From contig OZ059899.1 in the NCBI GenBank assembly GCA_964057225.1, positions 7,998,001 through 8,062,000 of the forward strand: a stretch of 64,000 nucleotides of DNA, in the 5' to 3' direction. Of this stretch, positions 3,487 through 52,712 are shown one piece after another. Both the position numbers and the translations under genes were made by a program. Within the stretch, counting starts at the first letter, position 1; every line of letters begins with the position of its first letter. The notes beneath the pieces were generated by a model. It did not search any database, was not told the origin of the DNA, and saw nothing but the letters and a program-made list of their open reading frames with translations. Source of the DNA: Auanema rhodensis (lineage: Eukaryota; Animalia; Nematoda).

Positions 3487-6359
3487 CCCTTCTAACCCAC
3501 AATATACACATACATCAATTTAACTCTACTCTGTTCTCTTCTTCTTCATCTTCGTTTTCATCATCGTCGTTCTTTCCCTTCTTTCTATTCTCTCCTTTTC
3601 CTTCAAACATTATCCTCTCCTCTCTTCTCCTTTACTCACCCGACTAACTTGGAGCAGATGTTTCCATCTTCAATCTGTGGCTCTTTAGCGTTGTCCTCTT
3701 TGAAAACAACGTTTAACTAAGCTAAACATGATATCTCCTTATTTTTTTGTCTTCAGTTATCTTCATACTATATAATTTACAAAATATCTTTTTTAAAATA
3801 TATTTTTATGATTTCAAATTTCTTGATAACATTATCAAAACAGTTGCTAGACATGTACTTGTCTCTCGTTCTTTTATTTTGAATGCTCTAATTAGTTTAT
3901 TAATATCATAATTTGATTTTAATAGTAGACTGGAAAAACTGCTTTTCTCGTCTCTTACCTCACAATCACCTTCATCTATTTATAGAAAAAGTAAAATTAG
4001 AGTTTAATCTGACAAATAAGATATTTCTCTTGAAATATAATTAAATATTTGGAAATTCAAAACATTTCTGAAATATATGAAGACAGATACTTGGTATGAA
4101 GAATGGTGTCAAGGAAGCATGATTGAACAATCATTTAACGCTCCAAATTTGACTATTTTTCACGCTTTATAATCATGAATTTGAGCAAATCATTGTCATT
4201 ACCAGCTGATTAAATAAGTTATTAAGAAATGTATATTAATCAACATTCAGAGAAATTTATTTTACCAAATTGTTCGTTCTTTATATAAACTATATTATAT
4301 TCCTAACAATATTTTTCAAATCATTTTAATTATATCCCTGAAGATTTAAATTTCAACAACAATTAGAAAGATTTATCTTTTCATATTGTTCTACGTCATT
4401 TTCAATATGAAAATATGAATATCTGCTTCGGTTCGCTGATAAATATTCGACCAGCTTTAGCACCTACGTTCATTTTATTTCAAAAAAAAAGTTATGAAAA
4501 ACCATTTTCAAAACTTTTTTTTCAAAGAACATGAATGCTTTCTCTTTATGATTTCAAATATTTCTATGTATTACAGTCATCAAAAACGTTCCGGATCATT
4601 ATGTATCCATTTGCCTTCTGTTAAACAAATCTTTTCCTTTTTTTTTCAAATTTCATATAAATTCTTTTTTTAGTTTTATCTTAAACACATGAAATAAGAA
4701 GAATATTATATATTATATGAATTATCATATTAATACTATATATTATATATATGAAATCATGTCCTTGAATAGAAATAGCAGATGCTCCAATCATTACTAC
4801 TTTCATTTCGCTATTATCAATTTTTCAATTTTTGCTGTTTCTTTGTCACATTTACATATTTATATTTATTTATTTATATTTTGTAAACAGCAATAATCTT
4901 TTATCATTCATTATAATTTTCATCAATTATATTCTGATTCTTATCTACTAATTTCTAAATCATGGAGTGAGCGATTGTTAGAAAAATAATTTTTTCTCTC
5001 AATTTGTGTTGAAAAAAATTTTTTTTTTCTCGCAATAACATAGCCATTTCACTTCCATTTCTCTACGAAAAAAATCTTATTTGTCAAAACATCTTTTTGA
5101 ACCAAATAGCCTTCCGTTTTTGGCATTATCGCCATACAGTTCACGGTCACCATCTAGCAGCTGTTACTGTCTGTCTTATAAGAAGATTTGTGGAGACGAT
5201 GGTTGGTCTAGAACACAGACCGCAATCACGGCGGTTAATTTAAATTTTCGAAACCGATTTTCCGGACACAGTTTGCCACGACCTCGACGTAACGACGATA
5301 ATGTATCTACGAGAATTCACAATGATGTCGTGTGGCACGCAATAATACATGCGCTTCAGTATGTTGATGACAAACTTACCATGATGCGTTGATAATTGGT
5401 AGTTTAAAGCATATTTCCTTAACTTTTTGAATTACAAATGTCTTAGACTGTTAGCTCTTTTCTTTTCTCTTACTTCTGTCTCTTTTTCTCTCTTTCTTTC
5501 TCCTTCCCCCCCCCCCTCTCTCTCTCTTATGCTTATTCTTCACATTACTCTCTTTTCCTCATAATCTTATCTTATTAAAGCTTTTCATAATACATCTGAT
5601 TGTTCTCATTAATTATTTCATAAATTTGTTTTTAAATTCAAATTAATTGCGTTCATATGTACTGAATATCCATTTCAAGTGGAAATGTATTCAGACTCTA
5701 CATATTTCTGTATCCATAAAATTAAAAATGGATATATGTATTCATATTTTAAAACTACAACTATGTTCTATTGTTTACATTTTCATTTATATAAATTTAA
5801 CTCAAAAAAAAAAAAAAAGAAAAATAAAAAAAATAGAAAATGAGAGTTTGCGATTCAAATTTATTTTCACTATGATTAATAATTACTATTTTAGTCAGAT
5901 ACTTATATGCTTATTCTCTTTTTCATATCCTTTCCTATATATATCTTTCCTTCTTTTTGATCCTCACTCTTTCCTTTTTCCTCAATCTCTCATCAAAACC
6001 CTCATTTTTCTACTTTCATTCATTTTTCTTTTAATTTACTCTCATTGAATTGAAACATAAATGCTGTATTTTAATTTAAAATATATAAATATATATACAT
6101 TTATCTACATAATTAGAATTTATCACATATTTGTTTGTATATTATATAATATAGTTAAGGAAAAATATAACAATTGCCATTTATTTTAATAATCCAAGGA
6201 ATATTGGAAGCTTTCTTATTATTTTTGTTAACTTTTCCTACATTAAACAGCAAAAACATATAGCAAGCTTTTCGTCCTCCTGCTCATCCTACTCTTCATC
6301 TACCTCCTCCTCCTACTCCTTATTTGTCTCATTCATTCTAATTCATATCCTATCTTCTC

Positions 6360-9843: not shown

Positions 9844-12800
9844 ATCATCGATTCGGCATAATACAATAAGATAATCGTTATTTGATTATATTTTTCATTT
9901 GGATTTTAGTGATAGCATTCTTTATTTTATATTTAATCTTATATTTCTTCATACATTTCGCTGTCATTATCTTTCAATATTTCTTATTTTCTTGTTTATT
10001 TGTTTTATTTTCTTATTTTACATTTTATTTTATTACAATTCTAGCATCTTACTTTCACATACCAATTTTCTATTTATCTCTTTTCCATGTATTCGGTTTC
10101 CAAATCCTTAATCTTCATTTCGCTTTTTGTCTTCTATGTCTCATCCATCCACTACCTTTTCCTCCAAATCTGTTGTCACCTGCATCAGGATTTTCAAACC
10201 ATCTTCTTTCGTGCCCTGATACGATAATAGCAGTGTCATATACTAGATAGACATCTTGAAAACTTAGTATACTTGTGAATCAGACTGAAACATTTTCAAC
10301 CTATTCTCTATATAACTCATATTCTAAAATTTATTTTTTCGGATCTAATTCATGTTTAACATCGTTCTTTCATTTCATTATCCGTTCTTCCAAAACTGAA
10401 CCTGCTTTACCAGCAAAATTTTATTGTATTTTTATATTTTTTCCAAAACGGACGGGTAGTCTGCAATAATTATTTTATAATTCTCTTCCTTTTTATTAAT
10501 GAATTTTAAGAAACATAATGAAAACATTCTGGATAAACGATATTTTACTTTATTTTATTTTTATTTTTAACAAAAACTCAAATATACATATACGAAATTA
10601 ATATGAAAAAGTTACATAATTTAACAACATATTATGTACATATCAATACATTTTTATAATTTCATTATAACATGTTTGGAAGGAGATTCAGCTTCCTCTA
10701 CCTCGCCTGCAAAACTATTGTAGCTTTTACAGCATTTTTAAATGAAAGAAAGATTAAAGCAAAAGTTCAAGAATTCATAATACAATCCATATATTGGATA
10801 AACGTTAAAGACGAGCTCACAGATATACAGAGCTGGCAACAATTGTTGTTCAGTGGACAACGAGTCCCCTTTCGGTTAGTAGAAAAGAAGAACTGGCTTT
10901 GATTTTAATTGAATAGACTTTGTTTCAACGCTATGTCGTCATTCTAATTGCTCATCTACATAGTAGGAAACGACATTGATAAAGAGAAAGGGGGGGGGGG
11001 AGAGAGTTCGATTAAGATGATCTGAATGGCATGGGAAGTAAGAGAGAATGAGATAATATACGTATACAAGTAGTACTAAAACAGGAGAATAGGATATGAA
11101 AATCAGAAAGAATTTAAAGATTTCATGTATGCATCTATCTGATTTTATGCTTTCAATCACTATTATCAGATAAACGATTTGATATGAAGATAACTTTTCA
11201 AACCAAAAACTATTCTTACACTCAAAAATTTCAAAATTACAAAAAAAATAAAGAGAACTATTTCGTTTATCTATTAGATTGCAATAGTACATGAAGCCCT
11301 TTAAGACCTGAGTATCAAGTGATTACAATTCTGGTTGCTAATACATCGGCAAAAAGGTTGAAAGCCTGACGATCGTTCCCCCCAGGGAGAAGTAGCTGTG
11401 AACCTTCTGTCTGCTCATCACACCCGGATTCTTTATTCTCTTTTTAGTTTGCTAGACCTCATTCCGATGTTCAACATGATATTTTTGTTTATATACATAC
11501 ATAGATTGGTTTGTTCGTTGACATGATTCCTTTAATGCTCTTAATGTTACAAAAATTGTTCACATTTTTTTTAAATTAAAAAAAAATTAAAAACGTTCTT
11601 GTATATATAAAATATTTTTTGAGTTAAGCTTTAAAATATGGCTAAAAACACACTTTCCCATACTTTTTTGCAGCAATATTATATGAATTTTCCCATAATA
11701 TCAGTGAGAAGTCTTTACATTTTTCTTGAAATTGAACTTCTTTAAAGATTTTTCTATAAATATACTGAAATCGTTTCGATAGAACCTTTGATCAATCTCA
11801 TGTCATTTATGGCTACCATCATCTTTTAGCTTCTATTGATGCCCCTGAGTGGTCGTTGTGTTGAAGCCTTCACTTTTTGCTCTTCAGCTTTCACATCGGT
11901 CATTGACTTCAGTACATCATTCAAATGCTCAAATATTCCATTTAACTTTATGTTTTTCACCTTTCCGTTCATTTTATTTTTTTTCAAAGTTTCATCTTAT
12001 TTTTCATTTAAGAATAACTAGAACTTCAAAACTGTTTACCGGGAAAATGAGTAAATGAAGTATGTTAATCTACTATAATTATATTTTCCATCATCTTATA
12101 ATGTTCTTTATACTCAACATTCTTCAAAAAGCTGAAAGCCTTACTTCTTTAGTTAAGATCAAATATCTTTGTCAGATCTGAAACATTTCAAAGTTTTTAT
12201 TTTAAAAATATAATATTTTTATTTTGTTAAGATAAATAACAATTCAATTTTATATTTGCATTAGAAAAAAATGATTTTGAACTATTTATTGATTATTCTC
12301 TCATTTTATTATAACTTAAAGGTTTTTTAATATTTTATAAATTTAAAATAAAAAATTCAAAATTAATATAACTAAAAGCATTTTAAGTTAAGTGGTTTTC
12401 CTTATGTTACAATAATATATTAAAATGAAAACGTTAAATATTCATTTTTTTTAGAAAAACGCTTATGCTGAAATTGATTTCAGTTTAAATTCATGTATAC
12501 ATATTAAACTAAAAAATTTCTTTTTTGAGCATTTCCAATAAGTCATTCAGCTTTTGGAAAATTCTGATATTCACTCATGTTACTTTCCTTACATATTTTT
12601 CTTTCAAAAATCTTAATAAGATTATTGGTTGAACATGAAAACTATGCTTAAAGAGGACAAGATGACAAAACGACAATATATTCAAGCTCGGCTATTGAGC
12701 TAAAACAATAATGCTTAATAACGAGTGAGAAGAATCCGTCTCAACATACTCTGATGGCATATCTTGAAAACGCCCATTTACGTGTATTTTAATTACAACT

Positions 12801-14377
12801 TGATTTTTCTCAACAAAAAATCTCAAAATACGTTCTCAGATCCGGAAGAGGTTTTGGTCGTCGTATCTCGTTTTCATTGATCAGATAGAGCTTTAGCGTC
12901 TTTGATTGTGCTTGATGAAAATCTAACCAATCTCATCTATTTCTCTTGTCCATCTTCCTTTTTATTGAAATCAACAATCGCCATAACATCACGTTAGTTC
13001 ATTTTCTAAATTTCAAGATTATCGACTTAGCAAGTTAAATATTTCCCTGACAAGTAAGACTATTTGTATATTAAGCACATATTTTATAACAATTAATATT
13101 CATATATGTGAATTTATATCAAATTAAATATATTTTAATTTGTATAAAATTGAATTATTTTTATAATTATCAAATTTGTTGTTTTTTTCTTTATTTTTCA
13201 CAAATATATTGAAAAATGAATATTAATGAGTTTTGATTATAAGGCTTGCTAGTTAGTTCCAGCTGTTCAAACATCTCACAAATAAATAATTGTAAATTAG
13301 ATTTCACATTATCCCTCTTAATCTTTCGGCTATATTAGATATTTCTTTAAAAGGCTTTTGATATCTACTACCTAGATTCTAAGCGTATTAACGTCTGTTG
13401 TGTCTATAATGTGAATATTTGAGTTTTTTTAAAAAAAAATAATTTTTTTGCTTTATACATATTACTCAAATATTATGTATTACTCTAATTTATCAACCGT
13501 TTATCGTCTAAATCTCATAATAAATGACGTTTTCACGTAAAATATTACGTTGGTACGCTTTGTATTTATGTATTTTCTTATTCAATTCTCAACCATTTTA
13601 ATAATATTTCTATACTTTTAGTATATTTTATTATTTTATTATATTATATATTATATAAACAATTTATAATTATAGTATTCATTTATAAAAATTAATATAA
13701 TATATTTACATTCATTTCATGTTCTTCATATATACTTTTCTTCTTCATCATTTTTTTTTCATCCATCTCTTCCATAATCAATTTTTATATGACGTCAATC
13801 ACCAAGTTTTTCAAAACATATTAAATCATTTTGTTTTTATAATAATAATAATAATTTTCCATAAACATTTCGATATAAATGCTTATATAGTTTGGATTTT
13901 CGAATTGAGTAATACTGAAGCTGAATCTTAATTTAGTTTCGTAGTCTCACACCGGTTAACATCACTCATTCACATTCATTTTGATTTTTTTCCGGAAAGA
14001 TGTCGGAAGCAGTATAAGGGAAAAATTCTTAGATAACAAATTCTAAACAACTTCACTTACAATTTTTTTAAGATTCATCTGCTTAATCCATCGGTAAATC
14101 ACTTACAGCTTTTCCTTATATGCATATATCTAGTCAAATATATGCCACTTAGAACTTTCCTTTTAGCCAATTCTACTACTTTTTCACAGTTCATTCTATT
14201 TCATTTTTATTTTTTAAATGTTTCAAAGTATTCTCTAACTGAATTCATGAAGTAACATTAAGAAAAATTCTCAAAAAAAAAAACTAATGGGAAATATAAC
14301 TTTTGCCAAAAACCTATCAGATTTCTATATATCATATATTCTTTAATTCTACTTATACAAATCCATATACATTTTAT

Positions 14378-14691
14378 CCTTAAGGTATCATTTTCACTCA
14401 GATTTTTCAAAATTCGTTAAACTGTCTGTTATTTTATAAAAAAAAAATATTTTTTGAGAAGAATTTCCGAGACAAAAGAGTTAAATTCAAGACAATTTTG
14501 AGCTTTTATAGCTTTTTCGGAGCACAAAATGTTTTTGTCATTTCCTCTAAGCTTAAGAAGACTTTTTAGTGAAACTAATATAAGAACAACTCAGCTAAAA
14601 AATTTTAGTAAAAATGGTTTTCTTCGTAATATTCTATTTTATTTTTCACCTTTGTTCTGTCTTAAGTATTAAAAATCAGGTGAAATTAAGG
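14378..14691. mobile_element. Degenerate MITE-like element with imperfect terminal inverted repeats
   Basis: Left end ccttaa-ggtatcat-tttcactcagattttt versus reverse complement of right end ccttaa-tttcacct-gattttt. TTAA at both ends; no ORF. Confidence 0.3.
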
Positions 14692-17604
14692 ACAAATATC
14701 CAGTTTTAAATTATGAACGCTTTTAATTTTTATAAAATATTATATTCTTATTAATATTAAATATAAAAATGAAAAATTTATATACTTATGCATGACGCTT
14801 TTGATTCACATTACTCAAAATATGGAAGAAGGAAATTGAACTTGGTTGACAACAGAAAACAAAGGAGTTTCCTTCTTTCCACACACGAGAGTTCACTTAC
14901 TAAATTTAAGAAGAAATTTTCTGTTGATGAATCTAAAATCTCAGGAAACGATGACAACGTTGATGAAAACGATGAAGCTGTTGCCCTTTTTTGAGCTTTG
15001 AACCAATAAAATGGGCAGAAGAAGTACGTAAACTATGTATAGACTCAAAACAAGTAAACGAACAAGTTTAATAGCTCCTATTCATATATGACAAGTAAAA
15101 AACGGAACAAAAAAACGATTTTGTCATCTTCATATGAGAACTATTTCATGAACATATTTACGTATATAAATAGTATATATATAGTATATAGTATTTAGAC
15201 ATATAATATATACTATATAGTATAATATTGATACATATATATATGTATATGTATGTATGATATACAAGATCTGATGATATATTTCTTTTTCATTCAGCAT
15301 TTTGTTTTAACAAAAAAAAAGAAAAAGAAAATGAAATAGAGAGGGTTCTGAGCAATTGTATTTCTCTCTTTCTCGTTTTCTCTGTCTTTCTTCAAATAAT
15401 TCATACTTTCTTTCTCTCTCATCCCTTTTAAATCTTTTTTTTTCCTACTTCTTATCCTTCTTTTCTTTCTCTTTTAGTCTTTTTTCTTATGTATCCGACC
15501 TTTTTTATTTTCCATTTAATTAAATAACGTCATTCATTCCCTGAATTTCATTCATATAATACATTTATTCTTCGTTATCTGATAATGAAATGATTTGAGC
15601 TTCGGACTCCACGTATGCAGCTCATGCAAATGATGATGAGCTGTTGATTTAAAAATCGGAATGTTTGACCTTCTCACTTTCATATAATTCTTCTTTTCTG
15701 ATCCTCATATCCTTTATTTCACATTTCCGTGCTACTTCAAATGTATGCATATATGGCTGAGAAGCCCATTGAATCCTGAGAGTTTCCTGCCCTAACTCTC
15801 TTTATTATGCTGTCTATCTCGATAAGATGTCGTCCTTCTTTCCGTCATAGAGAAGAGCTGGGTTCAGAGAGCGGTATAAGGGGAAAGTTCGGATAATCAA
15901 AAATTGGTCGTTGGTTCATCCTAATGTTTCTTCAATGTTTTTTGTTATAATTTCCAATGACACTCCTTCAACTTTGAAGAAGGGCAAAATTCAAGTATAA
16001 TTCATAATTTCACTTACATATGCGTGTTTTGGTCTTCCCCCTTAACTATTGTCATAGCGACAATTCTCTTTTCTCAGATCTTATGAACTTAACTTTCTTT
16101 TCGTTTTGTTCTTAAAGCTCCTTCGTTGTATTTTACATATATTTGTATCTTTATACTTTTTTTCAAATCTTGTATGTTAATAAAAGGACATTCAGGAGTC
16201 TGAGTTACATGTATTCATGTAAATGTGTGTATGCGTGAGAGAGCAGTAGAAACAAAAAAAAATTGGAGATACCCAGTCAAGGTAATCCCAAAAGAAAATC
16301 CTTTATGTATGTATAATACTTGGATGACAAAGCCAACAGAATGAATAGTAGAAATCTGAAAAGCATATTACTATTCAAGCCCAAAAGAAAACATCAAAAC
16401 TTCATATGGTTTATTCGTCTTATTTCTTAAAATATGACAACTTACTTCATTCATTTAATGTACTCACGAGACAACGAAATATTTGAAGTTTCTTTTGGCT
16501 TGTGATAAATTAATTTTTTCTATTTTTCCTTTGTTTGTGTTATTTACATTCTTGGAATGGAATCATCATTATGTACTAACATACATATGCTGTTCGATTT
16601 CAATTTATTTTTGAGTTTGATAAAAGCAAAAAAAAAGAAAAAAACATTATTTGTTATATTTTTAGTTATCCTACTGTTTTTTTCCTTTAGTAAACTCCTC
16701 ATCATTTTGGAAAAAAATGTTTAAAGAGTGCTTAACAAGAATTATAAATATTTGAAAATTAAACGAAAATAAGCTTTTTGTGCTCTATGTTCATCAGTTA
16801 TAATAAAAACGATGTTTAATAGAATAACTATTATTCACGCAAACGTATAATTTTCAAACTATTTATCTTTACATATTCAATTTTTGGTTTAATTTTTGAT
16901 AAAAAAACATTTGTTTCCATGTATTTATTTTTTATTTTTTTTAGTTTTGATGTACATTATGTATGTTATACATTCACTAATTTTTTTATTTTAGTCTTCT
17001 TATAGCTAGCTTGTTTCTCGATAATCTTTAACGAAACATGTATTATTTTCTTTTCATCTCAATACTATCATAGGTTTCTAGTATTACTATAAACGTATAT
17101 GTATATTGATATCTATGTATATACATAATATTTAGTATATGACGTTACTATCGTCATTCTATGTATGTTTTGTTTTAGAATATTCATGTCTCAAGTATAT
17201 TTAAACAGTATTTTATTCAATTATCTTTTTTTTTGTTCTTATAAAAAATTATATTTTTTCCTGTTGCTCTACCTTCCCCCCCCCCCAACCCTCTCTCTCT
17301 CTCTCTTTTTATCTCTCTACCTCTCTCGCTCTCTCTCTATGTTACTGCTCTTATTCCATTCCCTCCCTTGTTTTACAACATTAGCTCTTTCGCACGTTTA
17401 TTCATTTGAATAGAAAAAAAGCAATACTTCCACGTGTTCACGTTGGATGTACATGCACATACTACATATGTCAATCCTGCTGCTGTTCAGAACTCATTTC
17501 TCTTTCAGAAAAGCAGAGAACGGTTGTATTCATGTTTCTCACTCATACTCTCGTTCCCGTTCATCCACTTTCCCTTTTTCATCTTGCCTCTTCCAAGGCA
17601 AGCC

Positions 17605-20189
17605 ATGAATATTGCCCAGCTGATTAATGGCCAATCATTAGAAGCTCGTCAACCCGCAAAGGCGGTGAGTGTGTATGCCAGTTCGATACTTTTCTGTCTC
17701 GATCTTTCCTTGTTTCCTTTTACTCAATGATTATATCATGTAGATCCATTTATTTGTCCTAAATGTTCCACTATTTTTGTATGGTTAAACTGAAAACAGA
17801 GGAATTTTGAATTCACCCATCTCATGACTCCCACAGAACTCTTTTCTTCTATTTTTCGAAATTGTACTGAATGTTCACCTGATCTTTGTTGCCTTTTCAT
17901 CCTTTCCTTTATCTTTTTACTGCTTTTCAACACTAATTATTTAAGTTTTATTCTTAACATCTTAGGTTTTCGTCTCCTGAACCAGGTCGCCCGAATTCTT
18001 AATAAAGGAATGGCTTATGTACTTTTCATGCAGCATAAGCTGCTGCTAGGAAACAACTTGATCAGCAGGAGTGTAATAACATATCATATGATAATTTCTT
18101 TAAAATCTTGAATTATTTCTTCATTACTCGTTTATTATGCTTTTTCAATCTTTTGTTTAATTTCATAGAAGCTTTATATTTTACCCTTTTTTTCTAACAA
18201 AAAGTGAATTTCAGAAATGATCCAAGACATTAATCAACCCAGTTATCATCGCTCAGCTTGTGTAATTTTTTTTTTTGTAATTTTATTTTTAAAATATTTA
18301 TATTATAAAGAACAAAACAATATTTCAAATGTTTATGCAATAAAGCTTTTTTTGGCGATAGTTAGCACAAAAACTAAAACACCCCCAGTTTATTTTTTAA
18401 TCCTATTTTCTCTTCTAGCTTCAGATGTTATCTCCTTCACCTACTCTGTCTCCGGCACCAGTACGTCCGAACAGATTAGAAGCTCCTAGATCATTAAGAC
18501 GGTTAGTTTTCTTAAAGTAAAATCATTTTTTAGATTATGTTATTATATAATATACATATATATACATATGTATATAAATTTGAGAAATTAGAAAAAAAAC
18601 ACTTGAGAGTTACTATTCTTCTTTACATTATTTTAACCATTTTGTACTTTTTCTTTTATAGCTGCCGTTCCGCTTCACCAGCACCTCCGAGGGCTCCAAT
18701 GCTTTCCGTAGAACGACAACTTTTAATTAGGTAAATGTTATATACAACACACATGTAGATATTTGTATTTATTTATTTGAGAACAAAAAAAGAAATTTGA
18801 ATTTTTCTCTTTTAAAATTCGTCATGTTCAATATCCTTTAAATGAATTCTATTCTGGATATTCTTTCATCACTTACATATATCAAATTTCAAAATCATGA
18901 AGTAAATTCGATCAACATACCCTTAATGGATTGAAAAGTTTTATTCACTATTCTAATAGTTCAAAAACTTTCATTCACCCCCCCCCCTCTCTCTTCTTCT
19001 CCTCCCACCTCTACAAGGAAATGTTTCTTAGAGCTAAGATGATTAGACACCACTCGTACTAATAAGATTAGATTTAAAGTTCAAAAAAAAATACATACAT
19101 GTATGTGTATCATCTATACGATTTTACGAGAATCATATGGATCAAATTCTTATTCGTGACATTTTAAATCATCTTTTCCTGCCATGAGATCATTCTAAGA
19201 CAATCCTTGACAGCTTTGTCATACGTCACAAAGTTCATAATGTTCAAAAAAATTGACAGCACGTTACTCCGCAGAATCATGCAGTCATCACTGTTTGAAT
19301 ATTCAAAACGTTTGCTAAAGTTTTTCTGGAAAAATAACGACGAATAATGCAAAGTGATGGAATGAATATAATCGAAAAAAAGGAAGATTTAGCATATACT
19401 ATTGTTTTATAATATTTAGAATAAAATGAAATATAACTCATTTATTTGCAGGAAATCATGGCAACGTATATCACGAGGAGCATTTGGAGACATCTGGATG
19501 GGCGATCTAACATCACGTATTGGGGTTGATGTATTTGGTGAAGATTCGACTAGTTGCCGACGTCATACACGTCATTTTCTAGAGCTCATTCAGGTAATTT
19601 TAATATTTTATTACAAAAAAAAAAGAATTTTTGATTCATATACACTTTTTTTATTTTTTTTATTTATAAAATTGAATATATGAATGTTTTATTAATATCA
19701 TAAAAAACATAAAATACATCAATTGTTTTATGTATAAAGTTTATTTAAATAAATTTTATTTTATAAACAAATATACATAATTAATTATAATTAACTATTT
19801 ATAGTCATGTGTTGATAACATGAATGATTTGGAAACTGCTCTGAAGCCTTGGTTGGATACCTTAGGAAGAGGACATGCTGGTTTCAAAATCAAGTATTTA
19901 ATCTGAATTATAACTTTGTATAAGCATTTATTCAAGAGCTCGTCATTGGGAAGCTTTTGGTGAGACCTTAGCTGCCACGGTAACTCAATGTTTGGGGCAT
20001 GGACGAAATCATAAAGAAACTATAAAAGGATGGATGGTAATCATATACTGAATTTAGAATTTGTTTCTTAAAAATTTATTTCAGATTTTGTCTTCGTTTC
20101 TAGCCGACCGTTTGGCAGCTGCTTCTCGAGCCGGTCATTCTCCTATGCTCACTCCTCGGGTTCAACTTATGACCTTTGTGCAACCATAA
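17605..20189 (+). CDS. Nematode globin (glb family) with S/P-rich N-terminal extension
   Basis: Exons 18419-18501, 18662-18730, 19452-19593, 19805-19893, 19937-20036, 20085-20189 read ...LLIRKSWQRI (A-helix SW)...VDVFG...RRHTRHFLELIQSCVDNM (E helix)...LDTLGRGHAGF (proximal His F8)...HWEAFGETL...KGWMILSSFLADRL. Candidate phase-0 first exons: 17605-17664 and 18217-18261. Confidence 0.85.
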
Positions 20190-21068
20190 ACAAATATTAT
20201 TTTTTAATCAAAACATTTTATTAATTTTGAAAATTAATAAAACAAAATCTAATAATTGTGATGTAAGTATGTATATCTTAATCCCTAGCATATTTCAAAA
20301 AATTTAAATGTTTATGAGACTTTTGAGAGAGAAAAGCATCAATGATTGTTTTCCTCAAATTGTATCCTTTTATTGTGATGTTATCATCTCATCATTTTTA
20401 ACAAAAAAAAATTCATTATAATAGAATATGTTTTTTTCTTTTTTTATTATTATTATTTATTTTATTAATGAGCTATGTAAATATTTGGATCTCTTTATGT
20501 GCCAATATTAACAGCTAAAAACTGTGTACTACTTATTCTTAATTGTGAATGATTTATGATGATTAAAATGTTAAATCAAAAGTATTCTTTTCATTTTTTT
20601 TTAATTATTTTTCAGAAGAAAATATAAATAATTAGATTAAAATTATAAACAAAAATATATTATTAATCTTTAACTATGTACTATAATTGTAATTAAGTAT
20701 GAATATAGAACAACATATTTATTATATGATATATATTCTAAATAATTTATTAAAAACAAAGCAAATATGATTATATTTATTATAACATAATTATAAAAAG
20801 AATTGGAAAAAATGAGAATTATACACATTGTTTCAGTATTTATCCATTTGGCTATGGTTTCCAAGGATACGCGAAACAAACCCTTCTAACAATATACCGA
20901 CAAATGGCTTCGATATTCGCTATTGACAATTTGAAGTTACTCTTCGAATTTTCATTTTTATACTGCAACAGCATGTTCTTCATTTGTCTGTTTAAAACTT
21001 ATTTATCTTAAAATATTTATATATTTATATGTTATTTTCGTTTAATAAATTGAAATTTACAGAATGTT

Positions 21069-40391: not shown

Positions 40392-42723
40392 ATGTCTTTG
40401 CCCATTGAGCCAGAGTTGAACTCTAGCCGAGGAAGATACGAATTAAGTGATATCTATTTAGTATGCTTTTTGTAAATTTTTTAATAGTTTCTCATTATTT
40501 TTTTTCAGAGTTCTAGGGACGAACCTGTTGGGAAAAAACCAAGACATATCATGTATGACGAAGAGGTTGTGGAGAGACCAAAGTATGTTAATATACATGT
40601 ATTTAAATATTAATTAAACTAATGATTATGTTCATATGTAGAACTATGGGAGGACGCGTGCAAATGAAAATGGATAGGTTCAGAGATTATGTCGGGAGAT
40701 CCTGTTGTTCCTGTGTCGAAAGAGTTAGTTAAAAAAAGGAAGCTGTTTTATTTACTTCGTTATAGATGCCAGCCATTGTACTTGTCATTGTTGCATGCCT
40801 TGTTTTCGCTCTCCTGTTAGCTCTAATTCCAGCTGTTTTTATTCTAACAAATGCTGCCTCTAGTGAAGCCTTGGCTCAGATAGGTGAAGTCGAAATGAAT
40901 GTATTAATAACTATTAACTATCTGGAGAAACATTTTCATTTTTTAGGGATTGAGGAAAGGTTTCGGACTCCCTAGAATTGATCCTGATGATGAAGACGAT
41001 TTGCTGATTCACGGATTCCCAATTCACGAAGTCTTTCCTCTTAACGTATCCATTTGTCCTGGATTCGGATTCAGCTGTACCTCTGAGCCAGTAAGGTTTC
41101 TTATAATTAATTATGCTATTTTGCTTTTTTAGCACATTACTATTGGAACTAACCGCCGCTGTGATGGAATTCAAGACTGTGCCGACGCTTCTGATGAAGA
41201 AAATTGCAATGGTATGATCGAGCCAAATGATTAAAAAGAGAATTTGTTTTTAGACTGCAGAACAACTTTCTCTTGTATGTTGAATCCTGAGTCTACAGTT
41301 TCTAAGTTGAAGATATGTATTCGCCCTTCTCAATTGTGTGATGATGTCAAGCATTGCCTTGATAGTTCTGATGAAACTGCTCTTTGTGGTATCATAATGA
41401 TTATTATTAGAACGGAACCAAATTATTTTTTTAGAAAGAGAATGCTCGGAAGACGAGATGTCTTGTAAGTCATACAGTGGGAAGTCTATTTGCATTCCCA
41501 ACTCTTCCAAATGCGATGGTGTAAAGGATTGCAAAGGAGGAGATGACGAAAAGAACTGCGAGGAATGCACAAGAGGAGCTAGGGTATGAAGTGCATTTGA
41601 ACTTTGGCTATTTTTTAATTTGCAGATGTGCAAATCAACAGGAAAATGCATTGACTCTCGTTTCATTTGTGATGGATATACTCAATGTGCTGACGGTTCT
41701 GACGAGGAAGTATGATGTTTTCCAAAACGTTGAAGCTAGGTATTTTTTAGGAGTGTGATTGCCGTTCCTGCAGTGGCTCTACTAAAGCTCTATGTACCGA
41801 TGGTACTTGCATTGATCGCGAGAAGGTTTGCAACGGAAATATCGATTGTGGAGATGGAATGGATGAGAAAAACTGCGCTGGAAGCTGTCATTATGACGAA
41901 GAACCCGTAATTCGAAATCTTTTATGATTTTTAAAAATTTTTTGTCATTAGGAAGAGACTGTGTTGTGCCGTGACGGAAAAACTCATACAGTCTCCGAGG
42001 CATGCTCTGGCAGAATCGATGAGTGCGTATCCCTTTGCCCTACTTGCTCCAGTAGTCCTCATCTTTTCCAATGTCTTGATGGCTCTTGCATCAACAGATT
42101 TAAGGTTTCATTATTTTTAATTTAAGAATTTAATACTTTAAATTAGGTGTGCAACGGTGTATCTGATTGCAATGGAGGAGATGATGAAAAAAATTGCAAG
42201 TGCACTGTGAGTTCAATATATATTTGTATAAATTTATGAAATCTTGCAGGATGACAAATTCACTTGTGCTTCTGAGGATCAATGCATTGATAAAAATCGT
42301 CGTTGCGATGGTGTCCGCGACTGCTCCGATGACTCTGACGAAAAAGATTGCGATACTGTAATTTTTATTATTTTTAAAATTTTAATTTTATTTTTAAGTG
42401 CCCAGAAACTGCTCTCCGCTGTGAACATGACCGCTCTTGCCTTCCCCTTATTGCTCGATGTGACGGAGTTGTAGATTGCCCTGATGGTTCTGATGAAATT
42501 AACTGCTCATGCTATGGTTAGTGTTTAGTGTACAAGTTTTCCGAAAGATAATGGATCTTCAGAATGCACTGGAAAGCATATTCAAAATTACATGTGTGAA
42601 TCATCAAAACGTTGCATTAGAAGGGAGGAAGTATGTTCTCCATACTCTGTTTGTCCCAACGCTACTCTGATTGACAGACGCTATTGTGCTGATTTAGCAA
42701 TTAAAAAGAACTCTTTTTATTAA
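40392..42723 (+). CDS. egg-1: EGG-1/EGG-2-type type II membrane protein with eight LDL-receptor class A repeats
   Basis: Short cytoplasmic N-terminus, one TM ([24 protein letters not shown]), then CPGFGFSC...[16 protein letters not shown] and seven more CDG..DC.D.SDE..C-type repeats. Stop TAA 42721-42723. egg-1 and egg-2 cannot be distinguished. Confidence 0.85.
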
Positions 42724-42939
42724 TTTCAAATCCAAACTTACGAAATCTGTAATTAACCTCATGCAGTTACTTATGTTAACTTGATCTCATTTTTTAATAA
42801 GGATTGTAGCCAATTTTTTACTCTTTGGCCATGTTTTACCCTTAAATAATAAACGTTTTTTAATTTTATCGTTAACGCTCATAGTTTCACGTGCATTCAA
42901 ATACTACGTGATTATGCTATTTTCATCTACAACAACAAC

Positions 42940-44264
42940 ATGAACCGGTTCATCAAAAGCTTGTACTATCCGTTTTCTGTACGCTCGGAAGTCTTTACAA
43001 ATTTTTGTGTTTCTCCATAATTGTTTTTTGAATTAGGATTGTGAAGCTAATGTAGATCCTATGGAGGTTCAAGACGTTGAAAATCTACAATTAAATGTAC
43101 CCGAGTCGGATGGGGAAGATAACTGCAAAAGTTTTTAAAATAAGTTTTTAATTATCTAAACAGAATTATAGTTCCGATTGAATCTCTATACATAGAGAGA
43201 GGATTACCTGCCTTCGTGATGAATAATCGGAACCCTAAGAATGATTCTTTACCTGTCATGTTGGAAGAACTTAATGTAAGTGTGAAATAATGTGTATGTT
43301 ATGATGTAAATTGTTGATAGGATTTGCCTTCTCTGTCAAAATCTAATGAACGCTCTTCGGTTACAACACAGATTAAAGAAAATCGCAAGAAAGAAAAAAA
43401 ACCATCTCAAGTCATAAATGATCTGTCTGATGCAAATCGTACAACAGAATACAAGAAATCGGTTAAATCAGTGATATCTTATCCAAAATTCTTCAACGGA
43501 GTGGTAACCAGTTTTGTTCTGACCTAGGTAACAATTAATCTTTTAGAAGCTACCACAAGCAGAATCTCATTATTTCGCAAATAACACGGTGGAAGAGAGT
43601 GTTTGTCATGGCAATGAGATGGTAACTTCTGATGAAAGTAATAATAAAATTGATGAAAATGAAATTGGGGGGTCAGAACTGCAAGTAATATTACGTAGAT
43701 CAAACATTTTGTTATTAATTAATTCTATAGAGTTTCTCAGAAGATACTGATAATGATTCGACTAGTATAGAGTCAAAATATGTCGTAAGTTTAGTTTTTG
43801 AATTGTATATAGTTTCTTATATATATGTATGTATTGATCTTTAGGTTTCCGATTATTTCGGCTTTCAAAATTTGACAGGAAAGTTCAATGGTGCTGAACT
43901 TAAATGTTGTCCATCAATTACAAGAAGACCAATACGTATATAGATTTCAAAGTAATAACACCTGATATTTTACTTCAGATGAATTGTACAATGCTTTCAA
44001 AAGTGGTAATGAACATTTATCTCCCCAGGTAGTAGTAATTTTTTTATCCTTGGTCATAGATTTCGTTTTAGAAAAGCTATTTTCAAAATGAAATTCGAGT
44101 GAAAACAAAAGTTTGTTTTTTTCTTGTAATCTTGTTAATTCCATTATTTTTTAATCTCGCTTAATTAACCAGTTTGTACTTGTGTTTAGATCCCCAAAGT
44201 TCCCGGTCATGCGTTTGAGTATGTTAACTTACCATCAACCTCTGAGCTTTACGAAGACAGCTAG
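42940..44264 (+). CDS. Multi-exon acidic/low-complexity protein of unknown function
   Basis: Short exons flanked by GT-AG (MEVQDVENLQLNVPESDGED...; VSDYFGFQNLTGKFNGAELKCCPSITRRP; IPKVPGHAFEYVNLPSTSELYEDS*). Start uncertain (42940 or 43061). Confidence 0.6.
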
Positions 44265-45267
44265 GGATGATGAACGAATCTCTGATTTTAAATACTCCGA
44301 GGAATTATTTATATTATGTTATATGAAGATTATACATATTGTTTGAAAGTTGAGATAGAATTCTCATTTATTCATATGAAATTTTCTATTTAAATTTTAC
44401 CTAATTTAGTCGACTGTTGACAATACGGCTCCGTTTTAAGCACAGCTGGAAGTCAACTAATTTGGCGTTATGCTTGACTTTTACTAGTTGCTTACCACCG
44501 TGCTAGCTGCCGAGCCCTTTATCCCAGCTAACTGCAATTAATTGTTGTGTGCATGCGAAACAGGTGTTTCCACCCTGAGTGGTGATGGTATTAACTCAGA
44601 TCTCGAAGTATAGTGCAGTTCAGTACTCTACTTTCCTTAAAAGCCTGTGTTTTATTTCAGACATTTTAGTTACACTTCATGATTTTTTAATTCAAACAGT
44701 AAGCATTTGTTTCCTTATAAGTCTTGAATGAACGATATTAAAGTTTGTTCGTTCCTTTTTTCTGAATCTGGAAATTCTTAATGGATTGTAAATATTTCTA
44801 ACGTCCACTTATGGCTTATGGCCGTTTTGAATTCGCTTCATTGGTTTATCGGTCAATGATGTGATGTCTCGCCGTGAGGTAGCTAGAAGTATAACAAATT
44901 GACAGCTTTCTTTAAAAAAAACAATTCATTTTGCTTTATTTTTTTAACTGATTGATTCTTACAATAGAACTTACTTCTATTTCATCTTTATTTTCTGCTT
45001 GTCAACCATATGCCTGCTTCTAGTTCATGAAAAACATTTTTGATTGTTAGATCATAGATAGAAGTAAATTATTATTTTCGGACCTTACTAATTCGCAATA
45101 TTGCTTTTAAGATTACAACATAAGCTTCAAACAATAGCTTCACTATCCTTCTTTCATATTTCAAGAAAACTACTCGTTATTCCTTAAAATTATATATTCA
45201 CCTCTTTCTTCCTTATTTGTATTTTTCCTTATTTGTATTTTTTTAAATTTAAGAATATTTAAACGAA

Positions 45268-45741
45268 ATGGTTATGATGGAACATGAAGAAAAAAGGAAA
45301 CTAGTAAGTATTCCCCCCCCCCTAGTCACACATGAAATAATATCTCTATAATATTTTGAAGTTATAAATAATGTTTAAATTTCAGTATGATGATATAAAG
45401 AGCACAGGTGGCAGATTTCTTTCAAATACTACAGCTCATGGTTTACCTCAAATTCAATTGAGTTTTTTTCTTATTTTTCCTGTTTTCTCTTCATTTCAAA
45501 TAACAGTTATTAGACTGTTTGTGTTTTCTTGCTCTAAGTTAATTATAATCTTTTCAGAAGTCAAAATCATTATTTGGTAGATGGTTCTGGTTTTTTATAT
45601 GGTTATTGGCTGCATTAGTTTTTCTCATAACTGTACGTTAATTGGAAACAAGATATGAGACTGGAAGTTTCCATTTTCTAATTTCAGGCTCTATTATTGT
45701 GGGGAAAATACCAACATCAAACACCAATGACGTCTGTATCG
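45268..45741 (+). CDS. Alternative degenerin N-terminal module (HG motif + TM1) upstream of deg-1
   Basis: Exons 45268-45303, 45386-~45460, 45558-45632, 45688-45741 encode ...RFLSNTTAHGLPQIQL / KSKSLFGRWFWFFIWLLAALVFLIT / ALLLWGKYQHQTPMTSVS and end in phase 0, compatible with the 48763 acceptor. One junction (45461 to 45558) is out of phase with the obvious GT donor. Confidence 0.65.
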
Positions 45742-48333
45742 GTTAGTTATATTTATTAAAATTTCCGTAAAATACAAGTATACCTATTCAAAAACATTAT
45801 ATTACATACTAGAATTCTCCAGTGCAATTTCTAGACTTTAGTTTTCTATTACTTTACCTCTTTTTGCACACCAAATTGAGTCATCTAGTTCCCCAGAGAG
45901 TATGAGGAGTTGAAAACCTAACCGAGATTGCTATCGGGAAACAAATTTCGTATGTTGCTTTTTGTGGTAATTGAAACCACAAACACATCTACACATTTAC
46001 ACATAGTAACATTGGAAGATTAGTTTCTTTTTTAGAATATTGACGGGAAAACAGAATAAAAACATTTCGTGTTACATCATTAATTTTGTAGCTTATATAT
46101 CGCTCTCCTAGTATAACTTTACTCAATTCTTATATGTATTTTGTCTTTACCTCTTTTGTTCTTAACTTTTTCATTAAAAAGCCGGAAAATAGACTCAGTA
46201 ATATACGAGGTCCTTGGAAAGTGGACGAGCTAAGTTGATTGGTACCCTTGACAAGTTTAGTGAAACCATGTCCTTTTAAGTTTTCATAAGTATTTTGAAA
46301 GCCAACTGGAAATAAGTTGTATTTTGAAATTGAGCTGTTGTAGAATATTCTTTTTAAACTTTGATATAAGATATTATCTCAATTGAATTTGATTAGTTTC
46401 AAAATGTCTGATATTAATGTAATTGTTTGTTTTGAGAATAATCATGTTCGATGAACATTACTATTGAACTTTTAGGATAAAGCACTTGAGTATATTCTTT
46501 TTTTTGTTCTCAGACTTATCTGTTTAAATTGACTTTTCCAAAATTCATTTTGATTACCTTGTAGCAAAATCGCTGACCCTGAAACGAAGTACTCAGTTAA
46601 AAGTTCTATAAAAGTGTAGCTCTTATTTAGTTGGAACAACGAAACGAAGCCAAACTATTTTACTAAAATCACTATTGCTTGTATAGTTTTGGCTCTTTGT
46701 TAGTATATAACTTTATTTTCAACAGTAATAGTAGCTATATTACACCGTCCACTCTTCAAGATGTCTGTTCAAGCTTGAAATTTCAAACCTCTTCTATATC
46801 ATTGTTATTATTCATCATAAGACATTCAAAATTGAAGTTGTTATTATTTATTTCAAAACCTTTTAACTTTAAGTAACCTAACTTCATTTACCTTTATTTA
46901 ATATACCAGTTAATGAATAAAATCTCTTGAAAATATATTCTAGAGCCAAGAATATAATAATGTCTATCAGATTGTGAATTTTGCCCAACCCCCCCTCATC
47001 ACATGGTTCTAAATTTTGGATATTCATGAACGTTTTATTCCCTCTTAGGTTTTGTATAGACAAATATCCATGAATGCATAATTTATTTCTCATGTAACAC
47101 CGTCATCTCAACTGATTTTGGGTAACAACTTCTGCCGGCCTATTAAGTTACAAGTTGTATGTTTCTTTTTTCTTTTCTATGATGTTTTTTCACTAGCATT
47201 TTCCTCATACAAGGATATAATCACAAGTTCTTTTTGTCTTCTACAAGCACCTTGTGGCATATTTTCAATGATAAGCTGTATTATGTTCTATTATTCATAC
47301 ACATACAACTTGCATATACTTATATCATCCATTATTTTTTGTTTTTTTCGTTGATTGCTAATTTATGAATGTTTTCCATTTCATACCACTAAAAAATGAT
47401 TAACTGAAATATAATTAATTTGCTTGAGAAATCTGAATACTATATGTTACTTTGTGTTTTGAAAATTTCGTGGAGGGTTTTAAGGCTCATCACGTTCTGA
47501 AATTATATGCTTTTACAACGGTTGCTTGAACCAATTTACAAAATGTCATCGGAACAATCGTTTAACTGTTTTTTGTTTGGTCTTGCCATAGAAAAAGCTA
47601 AAATAGCTTTTGACTTGATACTAAAAGATGATAAAATAAACTCTTTGATGAGTACTTTTGACTCCAATCGGTTCGATATCTCTTGAATTTTGAGAATCGT
47701 TTCTCTTTCTTCTTATTGATGACCACAAGCTTCCACTAGTTTAATTAATCACTCTTACGATCAAAACGCTATCCTAATGCTTTCTGTTTTCATCATATTT
47801 CAGAGTAGTTTAATGCAATTCATAATTTTGAAAAACCTATTATTATTTTATATTTAAATGTTTTTCTCTCATGCCCTTCAGTGTGTTCATATTCTTTCTC
47901 AATTTTCTTTTTTAGAACAAGAGTTTATTCGTTGTATTTAACTCTTGTTGGCTATATGTAAAGCTTAAGTTTAACAATTCAATCAACCTTTGTAACTTTA
48001 TGGAATATATTCTGAGATTCGTAAAAGCTTTTTTGTTACCTAGAACATAATGAAACGAACTTGACTGCATAGCCCTTTTATTTAAACTTGATGAAAGACA
48101 GAAAAAGATCACATGTAGAGATGATGTTATCCTCCCATCCCTTCTCAAAAGAAAAGAAACGATCTTTCATTGCTAGCCAATGATATATAATATATATATC
48201 TATCTTTAGTTTTCCTTTTATACTTTTTTTTTCGAGACTAAATATATATTTCTATCATAAATCTGAATACATTCCAGAATAAAATTGTTACTTGAATTTA
48301 TTGTCCAGCTTTAACTTATTCAAGTTATTGTCA

Positions 48334-51300
48334 ATGGCACCAGGGGTATTATCAACGAATTCTCCTATTCCTCCTGGATATAACGATTATATATACGAAA
48401 AGAACTTCAATGATCAGTTTTCTTCACGAACATCAAGACGTGAATCATTATCTGCTCAAAATGAAGTAGCAGAAAATCCTCGTAATCTTTGGACAAAACT
48501 GTATCTGTTCCTCGATAACACTACCGCTCATGGAGCTAAGCGAATTTTAATTGCAAGAACACGATACAGTCGATGGTTTTGGATATTATTAGTGATATTC
48601 GGAGTTCTCGCATTTAGCTTTGTTGTAATGAGGCTTACTCAAAAGTATAATAGCAAGGAGAAAATAACCAGTATCACTGTATGTTTTTGATTAATTTTTG
48701 TCAAAAATTAAAAATATAAATTCTATTATTTCTTTTCACGCTTGTACCTTTGTATATTTTCAGCTCAAATTTGATCAAGTGGATTTCCCAGCTATTACGT
48801 TTTGTAATTTAAATCCATATAAAAAAAGTTTAATCAACATGGTGCCATCAATTAGAGATACGGTAAGTGCATAATAAGTTCAATTTGTTGATATCTCTCT
48901 TCTAGATGGATGTCTATGATAATGCCAAATCACACAGTAAATTGGAAGGCGAGAATGAGAAGAAGAAAACAAAATTCATGAGAAGACAATATGCAGAAGT
49001 TGCTGCTCAACGGGTATGAATCACTTACTTAGTAGTAGCCAGTGAAACAATAACAGTTGATGAGTTTCTACTTCAAGGTTGATTTCAGGTAAAACAGCTG
49101 TTTGAAAAAGAAATAGAAGAAGGCCTTAAAGAATTGAATAACCAAAGAACTGATCTTAACAGATCTCACATAGTTCATGATACTGCTTCAAGAGAGAAAA
49201 GACAGGTGAATCAAAAACCCCCTACTCAAACATCAATTTTCTAGAAAACATGAGTTTATTCTATGTTGCTCTAGCGGTCATTTGAAATAAAGCGCAAGAC
49301 CTGTCATTTTAAACAAAATGAACATTCGATACGGTTGTCTACAAACTTTTTTGCAGGTTCCTCGACGACGTTATGAAGCTATTGAAGCTCATTGTAGATG
49401 TGTTGGAAAGCCTGATATGGAATGCATACGATTTGAAACTCCGCCGAAAAATGATGTTTGTGATTTAAACAACTTGCAATTCATATAAAAATAATTATTA
49501 AAGAATTCAAAATGTGTATGTACATTTGACAGTGATATGATGGTTGCTTGGCCTTGTTTTAATATCAGGTGGGTTAATGTCATTTTCAACATTAAATTCA
49601 TTGCATTTACTACAACTTTTATGTTGTCACCAATATGTAGTTTGATTCGAATAGAAAATGCGTTCAATGACAAGTACATACATCATAACTAAACTACACT
49701 TTCACAATGCTGCCATTTAAATTTTTATAAGTGTAGTTTCATACCTTAAGATGGAATTTAATTAAATACTCACGATCTACATACCAGATCTATTTATGAG
49801 ATCGAAACTGACTTGATCTAGCTGATCTAATAAGATGTCAAAATTTCGTACTTTTCCGCTTTGAAAAATCAGTTGGTTTATCGTTTTTCAGCATCTGGTA
49901 TGATCATGTCTGTCCTTTTTGCACAGATGAAGGGCATTGTGAGGCTACCTCTAGCGATCCAAACTTTCCTAGTATGGATTGGCCATGCAAATGTCGTAAT
50001 AGAACAACTCCCTTAGAGTCAGGTGAAGATGTAAGTGCTTTGTATAATATTTTTCCTATATTTTGCTTCAATCATATTTAGTTCAGCTTTTCTAATCTTT
50101 TTTCCTTTTTTTAACATTACCCTTTTTATTATTTTTGCTTGCTTTACGCTTCCTTTCAGCCGTTAGAAAAGAAATATGGATTTTCAAAGGTGATCTTAGT
50201 TGCATAGATTGGTAGTATTCAGAGTTTGACATAGCTCGCACTATTTATCACACAGTTTGAATACTATTTTAGATTTGTTGAGCCACTTGTCCTTAGCATA
50301 CATAGCATGAATGTTTAGTATATGTTATCTGAGATGTTTTTTTTATTGTTTGTTATAGTTACATTAATCTGTACTAATTCTTGTAGATAGATCGTTTGTT
50401 TGTTTGTTTTTTCAAGTTTTAAATCTCTTGTATAAGAAATGTCTATATAGATAGTTTGTCAATCATTTTACAATTTCCAGACACCATATTGCATAGGAAA
50501 AGAGCCTGTAGTGATCCGAAAATTATGGACAGAAGACAATTCAACAACAGAAGTGCCTACATCAACCACTACAAGTAAGTTTTCGATTCTTTGTCGCTTC
50601 AAACAATTTTTGCTTTTTTTTTATCACATTTTTCGTTAGCACATGCACCTACTACTACTACCACAATCACTCCTTCTACGACCACCACTACAGAACTTCC
50701 AACAACCACTACAACTTCAACTACCACGACTTCAACTACCACGACACCGTCGTCTACTACTTCAACAACTACCCCTGCAACCACAACAGAATCTCCGCAA
50801 ACTAGTATGTAGAAATGCTTTGCACTTATAATTTTTTAAAACTATCTTCTTTGTTTCTACTTGGTTTATCTGTATAAGTAAGGCTATCTAAAAAGGTTGC
50901 ATACTTTTATACATACTGTACAGTATGTGCTTTCTGTACATTTTATGTTTGGGTGAGTGAAAAATAGAAAGATCTTGTGGATCTTAGAATGGAAAATATG
51001 TCTTTATTTATAATTGAAGTTTTAAAAAATTAGCTATTATGTTAGATTTTGAAATGACTAATAGCCGCTCTTATTCGTTTTCATCTAATGTATTTTAAAG
51101 CATCGCGGCCGGTAAAACCTAATCAACGTGCCATTGTGAGCAATCCAGAAACAATCAAAGCTTTTGGATTCAGTGTAAGTTTAAGTTTTGTTTTGCAATC
51201 ATATTTTATGGATTTTTAGGGAATGACTGATGGCGTTGCTATGTTAACGAAGGCTAAGGAAAATCTGATGTTCACTATGGCTGCTCTATCAGAGGAACAG

Positions 51301-52712
51301 AGGATAGCTTTAAGTCAAAGTAAACATGAGTTCATTGAAATGTGCTCATTCAATGGCCGAGAATGTGACATAGAACAGTAATGATCTTAATTAATATATT
51401 TAAAGAAACTTCATGTTTTCAGAGATTTTCGATTGCATGTTGATCCCGAATTCGGAAATTGTTTTACTTTCAATTATGATGTAGAAAATAACTATACTAG
51501 TAGTAGAGCGGGTCCTATGTATGGTTCGTACATCAAGATTTAACATAGTATTTGTTTTTGATTCAGGCATTCGTATTTTGTTATTTGTTAATACTTCGGA
51601 TTATATGTCAACATCGGAATCTTCTGGAATTCGGCTAGCCATTCATCCACCTACACAATATCCATTTCCTGACACTTTTGGTTATTCAGCTCCTGTTGGA
51701 TTTGCTTCAAGTTTTGGAATGAAAAAAGTTTGTTTAGCATTTCTAGTTCAATTTTAGTATTTGTAATTAGAAAGTAATGCATCGTCTGAATTCACCACCG
51801 GGTGAATGTGTTGTTGCCAGAGAAGTCGATCAGACTGATTATATTTATCATGGTTATGATTATCAGCCGGAGGTATGTAGTTGACAGAAATAAGTTTCCC
51901 TCAATTTAATAATTCAGGGATGTCATAGAAGTTGTTTCCAAAACCGTCTTTTGGATGATTGTGCTTGTGGAGATCCACGATTTCCTGTGCCACCTGGTAG
52001 AAGACATTGTTCTGCCTTTAACGCGACAGCTCGTAAACTAAAATTTATTTAAAATTATGAAATAAATTGATCAATTGTAGGTGATTGTCTAGCTGATAAA
52101 ATTGGCAATGTTGGGGATTTCCATCACATAACTGATCGAATGACGGATTGCGTTTGTAAACATTCCTGCACTGAAGTCTTACATGAAGTTACATTCTCAG
52201 CGAGTAGGTGGCCTTCCGGTGCTACTGATGTGAGTTTAAGTGTAACTTAAAAAGTGTTTACTATATATTGCTTAGTTAGGGGATTGTGATGGAATGACAG
52301 AAGTAGAATGTGAGCATTATTATAGACTGAATGCTGCTATGGTAGAGGTTTGTCTACTCTGTAACACATGTAAATCTTTAATTTTTTTCAGGTGTTTTAT
52401 GAACAACTAAATTATGAATTGTTGCAAGAATCGGAAGCTTATGGAATGGTTAATCTTATTGCCGATTTCGGTGGACATCTAGGATTATGGCTGGGTTAGT
52501 ATGAATATTTTTTTAAATCTAACTGTATGCTTTAAGGATTCTCCATGATAACTGTGACCGAATTTTTCGTTTTGATTGTTGATTGTTTATCTGTTTGTTT
52601 GAGTTCTCGAAGAGAGAAGAAAATGGAACGCACGAATACACTGAAGAAAGAACGGGAGCAACGTGCTATAGATAAAATGGATAAAGGACATGATGCTTTT
52701 GTTCAAATATAA
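48334..52712 (+). CDS. deg-1: DEG/ENaC degenerin sodium channel subunit
   Basis: [48 protein letters not shown], Thr-rich insert, [74 protein letters not shown] and C-terminus DAFVQI* match recalled DEG-1 along its length. Confidence 0.93.
50640..50805 (+). repeat. Thr-rich coding low-complexity exon of the degenerin ectodomain
   Basis: ACN-rich repeats encoding [28 protein letters not shown]... Confidence 0.85.

Follow-up and report, generated by a model that had tools for sequence, protein, structure and literature searches.

In vertebrates, ASIC1a and ASIC1b derive from alternative 5' regions of one gene, and in DEG/ENaC channels the His-Gly region preceding the first transmembrane segment (TM1) as well as TM1 itself influence gating and permeation. 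For the degenerin gene deg-1 of Caenorhabditis elegans, an isoform with an alternative N-terminus is present in public records as 'Degenerin deg-1' with a length of 758 amino acids (aa) (P0028; NP_001360711.1, VTW47535.1, UniProt A0A4V0ILZ4). Its first 95 residues form a distinct N-terminus (...RFLNNTTAHGLPRISKARNQMGRVFWVF... and ...RFLNNTTAHGLPRISKARNQMGRVFWVFVWLAFF...), which leads directly into the LKFDD exon, and after this junction the protein is identical to the standard isoforms except for two optional internal segments (indels). In the literature searched, no paper describing an N-terminal isoform of deg-1 was found, and in the deg-1 physiology paper 'deg-1 cDNA' was used with the isoform unnamed. 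Here, the deg-1 locus of the nematode Auanema rhodensis was analyzed in a stretch of 64,000 nucleotides (assembly GCA_964057225.1, contig OZ059899.1, positions 7,998,001 to 8,062,000), which is referred to as the window. A preliminary description of this DNA had held that no arrangement with two N-terminal modules was known for deg-1, but the RefSeq and UniProt records of C. elegans already carry it. The arrangement is not new for deg-1: the locus is the orthologue, in another species, of the isoform layout annotated in C. elegans.

The window gene harbors two sets of coding sequence for the N-terminus and TM1, an upstream module of four exons (U1 to U4) and a downstream module consisting of a single exon (D exon), both placed before a common LKFD exon. 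The four-exon unit with its N-terminus, TTAHG motif and TM1-like helix was read directly from the sequence together with its translations and splice signals, as had been described before. Both modules contain TTAHG followed by a hydrophobic stretch of ~22 residues, and in both the distance from the RWFW motif to the phase-0 end is 32 residues. Coordinates and phases were checked by script, and it was confirmed that the phase-0 ends of the two modules fall on the same aligned residue before the shared exon, which had been placed at 48763; this position is the G of the acceptor AG, and the exon starts at 48764. When the D exon was compared by tblastn to all 64 kb, the top two non-self matches were U3 (E 0.007) and U2 (E 0.012), which are colinear. 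The homology of the U exons to the family rests on this comparison and on their match to the C. elegans U module. The D exon itself matches positions 1-56 of the ASC profile (PF00858), and the shared exon is 85% identical to C. elegans DEG-1 residues 116-149. A word-based protein search with the U2-containing open reading frame or with the D exon gave no matches, which says little given the length window of that search.

The name deg-1, which had been assigned earlier, was found to be right. C. elegans DEG-1 residues 15-770 align by tblastn to 48376-52709, including the cysteine-rich ectodomain and the second transmembrane segment (TM2) with the conserved pore segment. An exhaustive search with the D exon returned only 21 matches, one of which was the 770-aa C. 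elegans degenerin DEG-1 (P0005). In a family search seeded with the latter, protein P0037 of Auanema sp. JU1783 ranks with the DEG-1 orthologues (63% identity), while MEC-4/10-type proteins are at ~40%. The N-terminus of P0037 is 79% identical to the D exon over 118 aligned residues, and tblastn of P0037, with its full length covered, gave identities to the window of 61-96% for conserved exons outside the repeats and of 46% for a single variable stretch. Judged by these alignments, the window gene is the orthologue of deg-1, its best full-length similarity being to DEG-1 and not to MEC-4, MEC-10, DEL-1 or UNC-8.

The upstream module was sought in related nematodes, as had been proposed, and was present in JU1783, C. 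elegans, C. briggsae and Pristionchus pacificus; the 91-aa protein P0020 of Cylicocyclus nassatus contains a further U-type module. In P. pacificus, the piece matching U4 reads LLGKYRNQRPSTLVE. In all five loci examined (the window and L003 to L006, where L003 is the JU1783 locus) the module lies upstream of deg-1 on the same strand. Exon by exon, the window U exons scored 66/62/28 against the C. elegans U module (U2 66, U3 62), compared with 37/23/23 against the C. elegans D module and 47/49/24 against the D exon of the window itself. The position of the intron inside TM1 and the length of the last U exon, 18 residues, are common to the window and C. elegans, and the phase-0 donor after this exon is kept in the window, JU1783 and C. 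elegans. These comparisons make the window U module an orthologue of its C. elegans counterpart; it is no recent duplicate of the D exon beside it. Given the higher exon-wise scores against the C. elegans module, the shared TM1 intron and the equal length of the last exon, the duplication of the module predates the split of these genera. As a separate observation, the TM1 intron of the P. pacificus U module has an apparent GC donor (CAG|GCAAGT, L005 ~5995-6005). Coordinates of the features are collected in the following table.

Features of the deg-1 locus in the window and of the corresponding loci in other nematodes (U, upstream module; D, downstream module)
Feature	Sequence	Position	Strand	Splice signals and ends	Content and basis
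U1	window	45268-45303	+	donor gtaagt	encodes MVMMEHEEKRKL; first coding exon of the upstream module
U2	window	45386-45460	+	acceptor tttcag	encodes YDDIKSTGGRFLSNTTAHGLPQIQL; pre-TM1 TTAHG motif; contains FLSNTTAHGLPQI
U2/U3 intron	window	45461-45557	+	no in-frame GT-AG pair	donor/acceptor enumeration
U3	window	45558-45632	+	acceptor ttttcag; donor gtacgt	encodes KSKSLFGRWFWFFIWLLAALVFLIT; linker and first part of TM1; contains RWFWFFIWLLAALVFLIT
U4	window	45688-45741	+	acceptor tttcag; donor gttagt, phase 0	encodes ALLLWGKYQHQTPMTSVS; end of TM1 and post-TM1 linker; ends TSVS
Long intron	window	45742-48763	+		contains the D exon; would have to be removed from an upstream-module transcript, as judged from phase compatibility and the C. 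elegans isoform
D exon	window	48334-48678	+	own ATG at 48334; donor gtatgt, phase 0	single exon, 115 aa; Pfam ASC, E 2.5e-9
Shared exon (LKFD/LKFDD)	window	48764-48862	+	acceptor, phase 0	Pfam ASC, E 1e-6
Remaining deg-1 exons	window	48906-52709	+		ectodomain, threonine (Thr)-rich insert, TM2, C-terminus; tblastn of C. elegans DEG-1 (P0005) and JU1783 P0037
deg-1 modules	C. elegans L006 (X chromosome)	U in three exons ~10920-12182; D exon 20150-20497; shared exon from 20539			
deg-1 modules	C. briggsae L004	U 11147-13102; D from 16309; shared exon from 16701			
deg-1 modules	P. pacificus L005 (deg-1)	U 5657 to ~6100; D from 10001			

The upstream module was compared to that of Auanema sp. JU1783 by blastn of window positions 43000-49000 against L003. 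Matches were obtained only for U2 (82%), U3 (79%) and a stretch from the D exon (48334-48988, 70%), and everything else upstream in the window has diverged from L003 beyond detection by blastn. Since no alignment to JU1783 is obtained ahead of the D exon, neither a conserved promoter nor a conserved trans-splice site can be named there. Exon-wise comparison showed that all four U exons align in JU1783 together with their splice signals. U1 aligns to L003 7346-7372, where the donor is gtgagt; the ATG at 45268 is TTG in JU1783, and the two species have the ATG at 45277 as their common start codon. U2 is 80% identical at the nucleotide level, and third codon positions account for 13 of its 15 differences, as they do for 12 of 19 in U3 and 12 of 18 in U4.

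Substitutions between the window and JU1783 were counted by the Nei-Gojobori method and pooled across the U exons. In the proposed frames of U1-U4, the proportion of differences was 0.83 at synonymous sites (pS) and 0.11 at nonsynonymous sites (pN). In the two shifted frames pS was 0.21 and 0.06, and pN 0.26 and 0.31. Because a high pS with a low pN is seen only in the proposed frames, where synonymous sites are saturated, these counts show purifying selection on the upstream module, as opposed to a decaying fragment.

The junction between U2 and U3 was unusual. The frames of the two exons require an intron length of 1 mod 3, and in JU1783 the intron shows the same offset, with 139 nt, also 1 mod 3, and no in-frame GT-AG pair (L003 7518-7660). 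Since neither species offers an in-frame GT-AG while both flanking exons are constrained, a non-canonical junction is implied for the window and JU1783. The earlier translation of the upstream unit passes from PQI to RWFW by dots, and at this place no GT-AG intron connects U2 to U3 in frame. Three in-frame readings of the intron were obtained, TT-AG (45458-45557), AG-AG (45461-45557) and GT-GA (45462-45558), and the 3' end of U2 is uncertain between 45457, 45460 and 45461. The TT-AG reading gives a linker of 12 residues between the HG and RWFW motifs, equal to that of the C. elegans U module and of the D modules, and the start of this intron, TTGAGTTT (TTAAGTTT in JU1783), is similar to the donor consensus of nematodes apart from its first base. 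In-frame GT donors at 45482, 45506, 45517, 45521, 45523 and 45538 have no conserved counterpart in JU1783 and would insert 7-24 odd residues. Solutions with micro-exons were likewise rejected, as they are not conserved in JU1783 either, and so was an alternative reading frame of U3, which is open in JU1783 and closed in the window.

We consider it very probable that the locus gives two DEG-1 subunits from two alternative 5' exon sets with alternative starts. Transcripts with the upstream start would carry U1-U4 (45268-45741) and would then be spliced from the phase-0 donor at 45742 over ~3 kb to 48764, skipping the D exon; this 45741-48764 junction is what the sequence would predict for A. rhodensis. 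Transcripts starting, or trans-spliced, just upstream of 48334 would instead contain the D exon and be spliced from its donor at 48679. The whole ectodomain, TM2 and the C-terminus would be common to both mRNAs, and the U and D transcripts would presumably be driven by separate promoters. The two subunits would differ in three places: at the cytoplasmic N-terminus, in the residues on either side of the conserved His-Gly, and in TM1 together with the first residues that follow it. As the His-Gly region and TM1 both affect gating and permeation, the two isoforms may plausibly differ in channel properties, in assembly or in the cell types that use them. Of the earlier proposal of one locus with two N-terminal/TM1 modules and one ectodomain, the arrangement itself is strongly supported by purifying selection and by orthology to C. 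elegans, and the distinct channel properties stay at the level of a plausible expectation.

Several observations weigh against two DEG-1 subunits from alternative starts. Pfam gave no match for U2 or U3 (25 aa each), exons that are too short to score, and U4 falls under the minimum length of the profile search. The annotation of JU1783 contains only the D start (P0037), and the upstream module is absent from it. In neither Thelazia nor a P. pacificus paralogue did the ~10-12 kb upstream reveal a second TTxHG motif, which is a weak negative. In P. pacificus (66 aa, L005 5546-6005) and C. nassatus (91 aa, 'unnamed protein product') the module is annotated as an orphan mini-protein. Finally, at the U2/U3 junction a single GT lies close to where U2 ends (45462), and pairing it with the canonical acceptor ttttcag (AG 45556-57) removes 96 nt and results in a frameshift with a stop after seven codons. 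This lack of a canonical in-frame splice would fit an upstream module that is a decaying partial duplicate, a pseudo-module from which no full-length protein is made since its U2/U3 junction is broken. Yet the junction is common to JU1783, and in the exons flanking it synonymous change is saturated while amino acids have changed little, and this only in the frames that the non-canonical join connects. The exons are kept while the flanking non-coding DNA cannot be aligned, a pattern that a dead fragment would lose, and we regard decay as very unlikely.

The orphan gene calls in P. pacificus and C. nassatus could also point to a separate small gene encoding a stand-alone single-pass membrane peptide, and if the last intron were retained, the window frame would indeed stop six codons after U4. 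The C. elegans annotation, however, joins the module to the body of deg-1; in addition, the conserved phase-0 donor after the last U exon and the position of the module upstream of deg-1 at every locus examined speak against independence, which makes a separate gene hardly credible. The two mini-proteins probably represent first exons of deg-1 that were split off in error. The common downstream acceptor and the identical end phase would likewise be expected if the modules were cassette exons of one transcript, made from a single promoter by regulated mutually exclusive splicing. But the D exon has its own ATG, at which the D-type proteins of C. elegans and JU1783 begin, and splicing from the phase-0 donor of U4 to either of two AG sites examined just ahead of this exon (exon starts 48276 and 48309) would lead into stop codons, so that a productive U transcript would have to skip the D exon. 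Cassette splicing is therefore exceedingly improbable, and although the two modules described earlier as mutually exclusive are both present, they are better called alternative 5' exon sets, the D exon having its own ATG.

Further features were noted around deg-1 and its relatives. A gene with LDL-receptor class A repeats lies upstream of deg-1 on the + strand (window 40766-43700), and the JU1783 locus is syntenic, as an LDL-receptor class A gene precedes deg-1 there too (L003 2983-5275). Within the deg-1 ectodomain, a Thr-rich, mucin-like coding stretch was detected at window positions 50591-50812, which is also found in JU1783 P0037 and matches a segment that varies in length among the C. 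elegans deg-1 isoforms (18-residue indel). In P. pacificus, the locus of the paralogue P0010 (L001) contains two tandem ASC-family genes (1-5044 and 10001-16730), between which no second HG module was seen. A DEG-1 degenerin fragment of Parelaphostrongylus tenuis (P0007) is named 'pseudouridine synthase deg1' in NCBI and UniProt, which looks like a mix-up of gene symbols.

For the gene model, these results provide a correction, as deg-1 gains an upstream alternative start module that is lacking in the annotation of the closest annotated relative, JU1783. Since the arrangement is already contained in RefSeq and WormBase-derived records of C. elegans, what is added here is modest, namely that the module dates far back, being found in four genera, and is strongly constrained, which argues that the second isoform is functional. 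The interest of the locus, likewise modest, lies in deep conservation combined with little functional study and one conserved non-canonical intron. A broader proposition is that DEG-1 exists in two N-terminus/TM1 versions across rhabditines (Caenorhabditis, Auanema, Pristionchus and strongylids), that the U version is physiologically distinct, and that in the Auanema group it depends on a non-GT-AG intron kept through saturating synonymous divergence. We judge the chances of this proposition to be evenly balanced; if true, the reported DEG-1 physiology may cover only half of the output of the gene.

The closest described system is deg-1 of C. elegans (NP_001360711.1 versus NP_509311.1/P24585), with which the window locus shares a multi-exon U module, a single-exon D module and the LKFD exon following both. 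The U modules of the two species have the signature RFL-NTTAHGLP-I, a distance of 32 residues between RxFW and the junction, and the same position of the TM1 intron. They differ in that the window U module has an extra intron with non-canonical ends between the HG motif and TM1, and only ~26-29 residues before HG, compared with 47 in C. elegans. The distance from the U to the D module is also shorter, with 2.6 kb in the window versus ~8 kb in C. elegans. The parallel to ASIC1a/1b that had been drawn for this locus, which may be extended to ASIC2a/2b, holds as a functional likeness, since in each case a single DEG/ENaC gene encodes two subunits with distinct N-termini and TM1 segments and an otherwise common sequence. 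It does not hold for the extent of the exchanged part. In the ASICs, the alternative part also spans roughly the first third of the ectodomain, whereas in deg-1 the swap ends ~10 residues after TM1, directly before the LKFD exon, and does not include the proximal ectodomain. The two arrangements arose independently and represent a functional analogy, not a homology of arrangement. Within C. elegans, del-1 has predicted isoforms that are distinguished by their amino-terminal domains alone, and four splice variants are predicted for unc-8 (PMC7933985); del-1 and unc-8 are different genes, and their likeness to deg-1 consists in predicted N-terminal or splice variants.

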